A stretch of DNA of 64,000 nt from Trichosphaerium sp. ATCC 40318. Lineage: Eukaryota; Protista; Tubulinea. Shown piece after piece: positions 28,140 to 35,048 of the stretch. The stretch is from assembly GCA_038496445.1 (NCBI GenBank), contig JALMLS010000497.1:1-64000 (forward strand), read 5' to 3'. How positions within the stretch are numbered: position 1 is the stretch's first letter; each line of letters starts with the position of its first letter. Under the pieces are notes generated by a model. The model did no database searches. It saw only the letters and a program-made list of their open reading frames with translations, and was not told the DNA's origin. The position numbers and the translations under genes are program-made.

Positions 28140-29552
28140 GATTAAAAAATAAGTTTGGTGCCTGGCTAGTGTTTATCAACGAAGTGTTGAGGTTGTAGCT
28201 CAGACTCATTTAGATGCAAAATAATAATAAACAGAATGAAACGTACAATTTTTTCTTTGAGAATAAATAAAAGTGCTGACGTTAGTACTGACTGTATGGC
28301 CTTCGCAGAGAACCCTTTATATAAACCTAAGATGCCTTCCCCTTCCATTATTGTCTGTAAATGCAATATCAGTAAAAAAGCACGTGAAAAGTAAACTCTT
28401 TAGCATGCAAACTTAGAAAAAACTTACCTCAAAAGATTGCATCATTGATTGGTATTTAGAATCTTCTTGCTCTTCTCTTTTACGCACCTAAACGCAATGT
28501 ATTTTAGATCACAAATTCAGAAAAAGGGAATCCAGTAGTCAGTAACTAGGTAATAGCAACGCTAGAAACTAGTCTTCGTGCAAACAAAATTTGTTGGAGA
28601 TGAGTACCTGGAGTCTTGTCTTTACTACAATGTATGGATAAGTCGCTATCGTAGCGGCTAATTTAGACAATGCACCAAGAACAAATAGCTCTACTCCCGT
28701 AATATTCTTAGTACCCTTCCAAGCTAACAATCTCAATTTTGCTCTTTCAAAAACGGAATACTGAATAACAGGATTCAAAACTAAAACAAGAGCAGGCATT
28801 ATTCCCTTCCATAGAGCAAAGATTCCTTCTTGTTGAATCAATGACGACAGTGTAGCAAACGTTGATGTTTTTTCCTTTGATTGCTGCTGTCTCACTGTGA
28901 TTATCCATATTGGATTAGTAAGCAAGGCAGTCATACACCCTATCAGAAAAAGATTAGTGGGGTTTTTTTTCGCCTGAACTTAAAAATCATGTGCTGATCA
29001 CGTGGTATCAACCAACGCTTACAAACATTTACGAGTGTTAATTCTATAATGTAGTATTTAATTGAAGGTAAAAAAGCGTACCAGCGAGTGAAGACACAAT
29101 AATGTTTTCAGTGACATGCAAAGCTCTCCCGCTTGCTTGTTTTGCTGCCATTTTATTAAAAAGCTCATAAAAGTAGTAATACGCCGCTTGAGTTGCTGCG
29201 TTACCAACCATTGCCGAATACCACCCTCTACAAAGGTGTAAAAGGAGAAATAAGCTTGTTTTTCCGAAACTTACTTGTATAGCGCCTGACCGCCTTCGGA
29301 TGATATTATCTTATTAATCTGTTGCGTCATGGTCATTGTAATCTCCTCTTCGTTAGCCTACAATTTGGTAACATTTAGAATGCCAGTACGCTTTCAAACC
29401 TGGCGTCTTGTAGTCTAAAATACAGTTTAGGAGCGTAATATATGATTATTGAAGCGTACAAGTACGGATAATGGAAAAGTAGCTGTTAGACTTAGACATC
29501 CACCTAAAGCGCCTGCTAGTGCGTGGAGAAGCGCTGTGCCTTCACTTGCCAT
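28140..29552 (-). CDS. Peroxisomal membrane carrier, PMP34/SLC25A17-like
   Basis: HALAGALGG..ATFPL, LLTNPIWII, ALVLVLNPVIQYSVFE, GALSKLAATIATYPYIVVKTRLQ and EGILGLYKG..QSVLTSA. The 3' end is approximate. Confidence 0.9.
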
Positions 29553-32105: not shown

Positions 32106-33141
32106 ATGCTATGGAAGCGATTGGTGTCCATAACTATACTGATCTGTGCGTTATTATGTTGGCACATCGTTTTACAGTTTTCTAGTGAAGCATTTTCAGC
32201 CCGTGTTTGGGAAGCCAGATTCGCTCACCATTTAAAGTATCCAACATCTCTTGTTGTTGAATCTCATGTACATCTGTCTACTCTATATGGTGCCTTATAA
32301 CGGAAACCAAGTTAGAGAGATAGCTGACATTGTCTTGTTTGTTTAGGTTTGATTGTACCTTTTCAGTTTTCAACAACTGTACGCAGCAGCTTTCCTATGA
32401 TTCATAGAGTATGTGGGTGTATCCTTTTCTATTTGTTGTTGAAATTGCACAAGGCAGCGTTTATAATTTTAACTTTTCTTGTGCTGCTTTGCTTGTTGCG
32501 CGCTTGTCACTTCGCTTCTGCCTGGTCCATTGCTTAAACAAATGTTATTGACATTATAAGCTTTGTTTGCTTGTAAAGTTTCAGACCAAGAACGTGATGA
32601 GTGGTAACTTGCCAAGCATGCATAATTTTACTACTTTCTTAATTTTGCTTTGATTGTTTTTTTTTCCTTCACTCTTTTGAGACTTGTACTACCTTCTGAG
32701 TATATACTTGAGTATTACAGGTATAATGTTAGGAGTGAATACAACACATGATATACATGTTCCAGTGGTAGCAGTACTAAATGGAGGATTGTTCGTGTAT
32801 GCAATATACAATTCATACATTGCTGCAAAAAATAAGAGATTTTTGGAACACAGAGCATGGAATCTCAGATCCCTTGCTTGTTCAGTGTTTGTACTTGTAC
32901 AGCGATTTTTGTTTGGTGTTTCTTTATCTTTCCTACCACCTGCTGATGTACGTGTTTTGGAGTTATTTTTAATGAATGTTGTACCTGACAATTTGATTTT
33001 GTATTTAGGATCACACATCTTGGATGAAGAATTGGGACACTGCTTTTGCATTGGGCAATTGGTTAAGCTTTGTTCTATGCAATATGTTTGTAGAGTATTA
33101 TATATCCTTACAGAAACCAAAGAAGCGAAAAATATACTAAT
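32106..33141 (+). CDS. DUF2306-like membrane protein
   Basis: PFQFSTTVRSSFPMIHRVCG..Y and EHRAWNLRSLA motifs, plus hydrophobic helices. Confidence 0.7.
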
Positions 33142-33411
33142 TAAGCATAATAGCACTGTTTTACACAAGAAACAAAATAGTGGAATCAGATTCCACTTTC
33201 CTACTTTCTCATTATTTTCACATCGTCAGTTTACTAATAATAACATGATGCCATCACATGTTAATCTAAACAAAGGTTTCACCTAAGCAGTAAGATGATT
33301 ACTTAGAGAAGCGCTCTATGAGCAATTCAAAAACAGAATTGTTAAGTGAGTTTATTTTTTGACATTATTTCACCACTTGGTAAAACTGACAACGTATCGC
33401 TGTACTCCACA

Positions 33412-35048
33412 ATGCAGAATAACCGATTTGACATTCTACCAAACGAAATAGTGCTCACAATATTCGAAAATACTGACACTTTAACGCTAGTGTACTGTGG
33501 TAGCGTATGCAGGCGTTGGTACGTGAGTTCAGATATAAACCGTTTTTCTTGCTTACAGGAGCCCTCGGTAGGCGCGATTTAAGCGTCGTAGAGTCTCTAT
33601 GGCCTATTTACAATGCTGAGCACTCTGTACGTTACTAAAGACCGCATTTGCTGTCAACTACGTGTTCTAGCTCGCTTACCATCTCGAAGGGCGCTAGAAG
33701 AGCTAATTACTTGCTTCGTAAACGAATAGAAGCAAAAGGACGGCGAGAACATCGCACACTTCAAAAGTACCGTAGAAATCATTTTATTCAGAAGATTGAC
33801 ATTTTGACACTTTAGGAAACATGATTTTGAACTTTTTCGTCGACTGCTTTTCACTTGTCCTCTTGTTTCTCATATCTGTGTTAACCAGTTTCATATGATA
33901 ATGGCTCAACTTGCAACCATGACCACAATAGTAGGCACGTATTTCATTCAACGAGAATATTTTAAGAATTTTTACTATTTTTGTTCTTACACATGCGTAG
34001 AAGCATTACCAACAATGAAAGAAGTCTATCAGCGTGTACGCAGAAAAGCAATTTATACTATTGAACCATACATGGGTTTTTTAATTAAAACGTAGTGGGC
34101 GTTATCACCTGTGCCTTACTTAAACCTCGGTTTGATTGGCGATTTTTGGATACTTGGAAGATTGTTTACACCTTCCATTGTTGAAAAGCCAGTGCGATCT
34201 CAAGTGAAAGTATTATCAAAAGGTACTTTATATGGGCTTGTATTCCATATTTTAATCTTATAATTGAACTTTAGCATTCATAATAACGCTCACTACTTCA
34301 TTCCTTAGTATGCCTGTGGAAACGAGTGCGTTTACTTTCATCAACACGTATTCAGTTAATTCTTGTTTTATAGTTAAAACTGGTATGGCTGCGCTATGGT
34401 CATCAAGTAACACAACGCATATAAGCGTTGCAAGAGAAATTTACACCAAGCATGGTATTACAGGGTTTTTCTCTGGAGGAATAACAGCTGTTGTTGCGAG
34501 TATGCAATTTTACTTGTTGTTGATAAACGTTTATAATTTCGGGTTAGTTGCTACATTGAAGACACTTGGTATGTTTTTGGGTTATAGATTATGGATATAC
34601 TTTGCTAAAAGATACAATGTATCGCACAAGACATCATATTCAGACCCTATAAGAAACACATTATGTACGTCATCCAAATGCGCAAAAAAGAAATCTAATT
34701 ATTTGTCCTGCAGGGTCAGTTTTATTTGTTGGCATCTGTGGTCATGTACTCACCACTCCTATAGTGACAGCTTGTCGCCTCATGTATGTACTAAAGCTAT
34801 AAACTATGGCTTTACTTAATGTATTTGTAGGCAAAGTGCACTAGTAGTTCCCGGTTCTTGCATGGCTGATAGGTCATTACTTAACACATTAGTTCTTGTA
34901 GTGAAAGAAAAAGGCTTCATGGCGCTTTTCCGTGGGTTACAACAATCTTCAGTACGTATTCAACTGGCGTTAAATGATTTTTAATTCATTTTAGAATCTT
35001 TTGTTGACAATGTTGATTGCTCAGTACACTGCAGTTACATGGTGTTAA
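33412..35048 (+). CDS. F-box domain fused to a divergent mitochondrial-carrier (SLC25) domain
   Basis: FDILPNEIVLTIFENTDTLTLVYCGSVCRRW. Later exons give MPVETVKT..VAREIYTKHGITGFFSG and TTPIVTACRLMQ..VVKEKGFMALFRG. Joining exon 1 to exon 2 needs a small indel near 33560. Confidence 0.6.

Follow-up and report, generated by a model that had tools for sequence, protein, structure and literature searches.

A candidate F-box/degenerate mitochondrial-carrier fusion gene in the amoeba Trichosphaerium sp.

We analysed a 64,000-nt window of the genome of the marine amoeba Trichosphaerium sp. ATCC 40318 (assembly GCA_038496445.1, contig JALMLS010000497.1, positions 1 to 64,000 of the forward strand), in which a locus at 33412-35048 carries an F-box exon followed on the same strand by exons that encode carrier-like repeats (Table 1). 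The published Trichosphaerium draft comprises 70.87 Mb at 37.7% GC; its genes contain 8.7 introns on average, and introns and exons have mean lengths of 75 and 154 nt, respectively (Tekle et al., 2023; PMC10521059). Our genome searches covered a 70.3-Mb, 642-contig assembly. A script-checked splice model, hereafter model C, joins the locus into 10 exons and nine GT-AG introns with a 343-residue open reading frame (ORF) free of defects, and its exon number and size agree with those published averages. The nine donors read GTGAGT, GTACGT, GTACGC, GTACTT, GTGCGT, GTATGC, GTACGT, GTATGT and GTACGT, the acceptors are TAG or CAG throughout, and the introns measure 69, 189, 60, 52, 48, 48, 49, 47 and 43 nt. 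Two further splice models, D and D2, differ from model C in the stretch between the F-box and exon 3 and are considered below. The upstream neighbour, on the forward strand at 32684-33283, is a membrane-protein-like ORF with a weak match to DUF2306 (19.8 bits, below the cut-off), and it terminates approximately 300 nt before the F-box start codon.

Table 1. Exons of the F-box/carrier locus under the alternative splice models (window coordinates), and paired carrier genes elsewhere in the assembly (contig:position).
Feature	Position	Strand	Content and boundaries
Exon 1	33412-33522	+	ATG start and F-box helices 1-3 up to CRRWY; strong donor GTGAGT at 33523
Exon 1 in model D	extended to 33526	+	weak donor GTTCAG
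Exon 2, model C	33592-33626	+	frame 1, SLYGLFTMLSTL; acceptor TAG 33591, donor GTACGT 33627
Exon 2' (D, D2)	33559-33626	+	frame 0, ALGRRDLSVVESLWPIYNAEHS; codon log-odds +3.6 over 22 codons, no stops
Exon 2b (D, D2)	33690-33766	+	basic linker GARRANYLLRKRIEAKGRREHRTLQK; acceptor AAG 33689, donor GTACCG 33767
Exon 3	33816-34035	+	putative helix 1, degenerate signature PLVSHICVNQ, loop
Exon 4	34096-34222	+	putative helix 2 (WALSPVPYLNLGLIGDFWILGRLF), start of repeat 2; codon log-odds +6.9
Exon 5	34275-34325	+	helix 3, start of intact signature (AFIITLTTSFLSMPVET); carrier HMM positions 114-140
Exon 6	34374-34499	+	IKTGMA...AREIYTKHGITGFFSGGITAVVA, repeat 2 core; PF00153 16.2-17.3 bits
Exon 7	34548-34664	+	helix 4 (TLKTLGMFLGYRLWIYFAKRY) and loop; codon log-odds +7.5
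Exon 8	34714-34783	+	helix 5, degenerate signature (VGICGHVLTTPIVTACRLM); second HMM domain, 12.7 bits
Exon 9	34831-34951	+	repeat 3 loop helix, LLNTLVLVVKEKGFMALFRG; PF00153 14.3-15.7 bits
Exon 10	34995-35048	+	short helix 6 (NLLLTMLIAQYTAVTWC); stop TAA 35046-35048
Carrier pair	C190:4568-5783 and C190:43498-44713		
Carrier pairs across contigs	C202/C410; C53/C163; C2/C577; C48/C485; C340/C28		

An earlier note on this DNA, made from its letters alone, had described a clear F-box at the start of the locus, and profile searches bear this out. The translation of 33412-33522, MQNNRFDILPNEIVLTIFENTDTLTLVYCGSVCRRWY, exceeded the cut-offs of both Pfam families, scoring 34.5 bits against PF12937 (E 1.7e-8; cut-off 24.3) and 29.5 bits against PF00646 (cut-off 20.5), and it reached 31 bits against an HMM of local F-boxes. 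The match spans profile positions 2 to 32 or 34 of 47. Local F-box paralogues end in a W-x9-W tail, which was regained in none of the splice variants examined; variants A, B and C and the read-through all scored 29-32 bits with the tail unaligned, and F-box scoring does not separate them. Exon 1 retains a clean F-box motif, a start codon and a donor site; lacking any close paralogue in the genome, it does not represent a freshly made pseudogene fragment.

Across the exons, codon-usage scores (from a table trained on 59 long ORFs of the same genome) were positive, with the exception of exon 2 of model C, which scored approximately zero in frame 1. Exon 3 lies within a 95-codon open frame (33808-34092) whose chance probability is about 1e-3 at the local base composition, and this frame contains no Met ahead of putative helix 1. 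The 60-nt intron that follows, 34036-34095, excises an in-frame TAG, while removal of the 48-nt intron at 34500-34547 puts the [FY]xG motif and helix 4 back at the distance that is normal for carriers. The introns at 34326-34373 and 34500-34547 are consecutive, each 48 nt long, free of stops and in frame, which is why a 169-codon ORF (34310-34816) spans both of them; retention of either would add 16 residues and keep the frame. At the 3' end, the unspliced alternative to exon 10 finishes in a non-hydrophobic tail. The seven introns from 34036 on have GC contents of 25-37%, as against 32-46% for the exons. In all seven, a TAAT- or TTAAT-like motif that is probably the branch site lies 11-16 nt upstream of the acceptor AG; a 49-nt stretch at 33767-33815 has TTGAC in its place. 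Exhaustive enumeration of GT-AG paths returned 2.6 million open paths and does not discriminate between models.

The carrier part proved recognisable at a considerable distance. Exon by exon, PF00153 gave 17.3, 16.2, 15.7 and 14.3 bits, all under the 22.3-bit cut-off. A phmmer search of 1.84e9 proteins with the 169-aa frame at 34310-34816 returned four matches at E<=1e-3 (best 1.2e-6), each of them a Mito_carr protein with three repeats and a Pfam score between 105 and 195 bits. With an HMM built from 59 carriers, the spliced model scored 40.8 bits across two domains that correspond to repeats 2 and 3, and protein-language-model features point to Mito_carr clusters, as a lead only. On these sequence comparisons, we regard repeats 2 and 3 as real, very diverged mitochondrial-carrier repeats. 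The two degenerate SLC25 repeats proposed in the earlier note are thus upheld, with its motifs KHGITGFFSG, PIVTAC and EKGFMALFRG all present. Its PVETVK, by contrast, needs correcting: spliced across 34325|34374, the sequence reads PVETIK, an intact Px[DE]xx[KR] signature. The signature is nonetheless partly lost, as had been noted, being intact in one of the three repeats and degenerate in PLVSHI and PIVTAC.

Beyond these signatures, PVETIK in repeat 2 is followed by TGMA in place of xRxQ, PIVTAC in repeat 3 by RLMQ, and PLVSHI in putative repeat 1 by CVNQ. The [FY][DE]xx[RK] motif expected on the even helices is absent from all three candidates (DFWILGRLF, YRLWIYFAKRY and LIAQYTAVTWC), and most transport-defining charged residues have been lost from the carrier part. 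Repeat 1 gave no significant match by Pfam, by carrier HMMs or by pairwise comparison, the last of these being without power even for repeat 2 against repeat 3. The N-terminal 113 residues contain two hydrophobic stretches and PLVSHICVNQ; exon 3 was assigned to repeat 1 by eye only. Hydropathy is compatible with six helices, and a sequence search of the PDB with the carrier part returned chance matches only.

How the F-box reaches the carrier frame depends on the splicing near 33560, where the earlier note had suspected a frame break. The break is real for the strongest pair of sites: donor GTGAGT at 33523 and acceptor CAG at 33558, with its pyrimidine tract, define a 36-nt intron and lead to a stop at 33580-82. 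However, three GT-AG paths avoid it and remain in frame, yielding products of 343 aa (model C), 368 aa (D2) and 381 aa (D). Model C sidesteps the break through the TAG acceptor at 33591, and in so doing intronises two pieces of GC-rich, coding-looking DNA, 33559-33591 (61% GC) and 33690-33766; its first two introns have 48% and 41% GC. Models D and D2 instead run from exon 1 to 33559-33626 or 33594-33626, then through 33690-33766 and on from 33816. Exon 2' requires the donor at 33527, the acceptor at 33593, or a one-nucleotide error in the CCC run at 33562-33564. Model D accordingly has to accept either a 32-nt intron with the weak donor GTTCAG at 33527 or an error of one base in that CCC run of a long-read assembly, and D2 has to use the second AG of a tandem acceptor. 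Both models also require the AAG acceptor at 33689 in order to include exon 2b, which has 45% GC, is open in frame 0 with a codon log-odds of +4.3 over 25 codons, and has no Pfam match. A genome search showed that the GC-rich region 33540-33830 is not a repeat. The acceptor at 33815 into exon 3 is common to models C, D and D2, and in each of them F-box and carrier share one frame throughout. The 49-nt stretch before exon 3 (33767-33815) resembles the gene's other introns, with 31% GC and GT...TAG ends.

The best match of the carrier part is P0001, with which exon 6 shares 39% identity over 60 residues; we consider this 257-aa protein a giant-virus carrier because its gene sits beside an NCLDV major capsid gene (3229-bp contig of GCA_046766455.1; genes at 212-985 and 1242-2576). 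The second signature of P0001 is likewise degenerate (PFFTVK). Its cousin P0007 comes from a contig of 117 kb whose gene content is giant-virus-like. After the viral carriers, the next-nearest proteins are of the Flx1/SLC25A32 type. The carrier part may conceivably have a viral source, if one only faintly indicated by these comparisons, and we infer a mitochondrial carrier of the folate/FAD/nucleotide-carrier type as the ancestor of the domain. Among the relatives of the nearest carrier, PF00153 stands alone in all 120 among the matches listed. No homologue was found among proteins of 93-296 aa in a database of 5.8e9 proteins, no relatives were found in metagenome contigs or viral contigs, and exon 6 as a query recovered no paralogue of the carrier part in the genome. 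Literature searches likewise found no description of an F-box combined with a carrier fold.

The window holds a second carrier gene, on the reverse strand at 28166-29400, 4-5 kb upstream of the locus. This is an ordinary, intron-containing gene with three repeats, and PF00153 scores reach 42.7 bits. Its donors (GTAAGT, GTACGC, GTACTC and GTACGT) are similar to those of model C. In a small test database, it was not among the best matches of the spliced model, so close kinship was not indicated.

The genome is rich in both of the families concerned. Giant-virus-origin gene models number 1,581 in the published annotation, and F-box and MORN are the commonest domains among them (PMC10521059). Our first look returned 1,809 F-box candidates, with E<=2e-5 for all 150 that were scored, a huge count that agrees with the published rank of the F-box among the giant-virus-derived genes of Trichosphaerium (PMC10521059). 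A genome profile search (positive control, 30 bits) found an F-box within 2 kb upstream of none of the 52 other carrier genes, and the F-box/carrier architecture is unique within this genome. Because F-box exons are so dense, about one such neighbour is expected by chance among approximately 53 carrier genes, and one was observed. Many carrier genes occur twice with identical scores, either on two contigs or in inverted orientation on a single one, which suggests uncollapsed haplotigs or recent segmental duplications. The F-box/carrier locus is present as a single copy in the assembly.

Given these numbers, chance adjacency has to be weighed, and with it the reading that the locus holds two independent head-to-tail genes, each with its own promoter. 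The earlier note had described the two parts as lying on one strand, joined through short introns with no gap. The shared strand and the lack of a promoter-sized gap stand, but the path from the F-box to the first recognisable carrier exon consists of exons and introns that together cover approximately 750 nt. Read from the F-box, the frame-0 ORF stops at 33810-33812, 4 nt before exon 3, and helix 1 is not preceded by a Met in its open frame, so that a separate promoter and start cannot be accommodated. The 4-80 nt available are too short for a terminator or a promoter. Moreover, the intergenic spacers flanking the gene measure about 300 nt, so two independently transcribed genes do not fit, and we consider this arrangement highly improbable in spite of the F-box density that would make a coincidental neighbour unremarkable.

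A less easily dismissed reading, although still an unlikely one in our judgement, is that a carrier-like protein is made alone, from Met 33613 (299 aa) or Met 33895, and that the F-box is an untranslated leftover in the 5' leader or makes up its own small ORF on a shared transcript. In model C, exon 2 contains Met 33613 in frame, 20 residues before the first signature proline, a spacing identical to that in the carriers P0001 and P0004; because this spacing matches ordinary short carriers, a carrier-only product would be natural. The two candidate starts, Met 33613 and the first ATG, also share an ACAATGC context. If the 49-nt stretch at 33767-33815 is retained, the F-box frame can close at 33810-12, and a separate F-box ORF would have about 50-100 aa, ending there or at 33636-38. 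Yet that stretch has the length, GC content and terminal dinucleotides of the gene's real introns, a peptide of 50-100 residues would have an F-box without a substrate-binding part, and a relic exon with no close paralogue would not be expected to keep its F-box, start codon and consensus donor. The frame break itself raises a further, more improbable scenario, in which a one-base frameshift near 33560 has recently killed a chimera by uncoupling its F-box while the carrier part was already drifting. The strongest donor and acceptor do lead straight to the stop at 33580-82, and the carrier part is extremely diverged, below Pfam cut-offs, without a PDB match and an orphan in the databases searched. 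Against this, about 340 codons and nine junctions show no stops, frameshifts or broken sites, and codon usage is positive; at 37% GC, that many intact codons are unexpected beyond a short period of neutrality. In-frame splice alternatives exist, the 36-nt intron behind the break would be shorter than every other intron of the gene (43-189 nt), and the break itself could be a homopolymer error of the long-read assembly.

Taken together, we favour, at odds slightly better than even (roughly 55%), the reading that the locus is a lineage-specific chimera of an F-box and a dead carrier, fused in frame as one Trichosphaerium gene of 10 or 11 exons. The predicted product of this fusion would consist of an N-terminal F-box, 12 to 40 residues, and then a six-helix carrier-like membrane domain. 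Two of the three matrix signatures and all cytoplasmic-network motifs are gone from its sequence, and alternating-access transport has probably been lost with them: in view of known SLC25 behaviour, loss of both salt-bridge networks makes classical transport of this kind unlikely. Skp1-Cullin sits in the cytosol or nucleus, and an F-box is useful only there. The termini of carriers face the cytosolic or the intermembrane side, and carrier-fold proteins in the outer membrane of mitochondria or in the peroxisomal membrane are known to have a cytosolic N-terminus. From these locations it follows that a fused protein would need a membrane with a cytosolic outer face, for which the outer mitochondrial membrane, the peroxisome or another organelle are candidates. 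The carrier-like body would then anchor the protein in the organelle membrane, leaving the N-terminus exposed to the cytosol, and the F-box would recruit Skp1-Cullin to that membrane, where either neighbouring proteins would be ubiquitinated or the protein's own turnover would be controlled. With moderate confidence, we propose that the fused protein acts as a membrane-anchored SCF receptor or as a self-regulated anchor. A more elaborate version is only tentative: a membrane SCF receptor built on a transport-dead carrier, possibly of giant-virus ancestry, might be one of several F-box fusions to eroded housekeeping folds, with the carrier fold serving as anchor or bait at the protein's natural site on the surface of a mitochondrion or other organelle.

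Such a protein would resemble several known systems in part. In common with the F-box family, it has an N-terminal F-box of the form LPxEI...VCRRW above Pfam cut-offs and a variable C-terminal domain after it; the C-terminal domain here, however, would be a polytopic membrane carrier fold, and the local W-x9-W tail is absent. With SLC25 carriers, it shares two repeats in which helix, signature, loop-helix, [FY]xG motif and helix follow in order, whereas it differs from them in its single intact signature out of three, the lack of [FY][DE]xx[RK], an unrecognisable repeat 1, exons that score below cut-off and the N-terminal F-box. MTCH1/MTCH2, SLC25A46 and yeast Ugo1 are transport-dead carrier-fold proteins of the outer mitochondrial membrane. 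They offer a carrier fold with eroded salt-bridge signatures and the idea of a membrane anchor or platform whose N-terminus is cytosolic; we know of no F-box on any of them. The comparison with MTCH2 and SLC25A46 drawn in the earlier note did not extend to sequence, as we detected no specific similarity: neither appears among the four matches in 1.84e9 proteins, and there was no PDB match. Aralar/citrin and SCaMC/APC are carriers with N-terminal EF-hands, which are exposed to the intermembrane space, where they gate a functional transporter. They share with the predicted fusion a soluble domain at the N-terminus of a carrier body, EF-hands in their case and an F-box here, and to our knowledge there is no F-box partner in the intermembrane space.

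If the fusion is not real, the locus would amount to an ordinary orphan gene for a carrier-like protein, preceded by a stray F-box exon. A real fusion would be, as far as our searches show, the first report of an F-box on a carrier fold, and would make a ubiquitin-ligase adaptor that is built as an integral protein of an organelle membrane. The carrier fold would thereby have been reused in a further case for a role other than transport. For the amoeba itself, a true fusion would add to the evidence that its partly virus-derived F-box family diversifies by way of captured, disabled copies of housekeeping genes.
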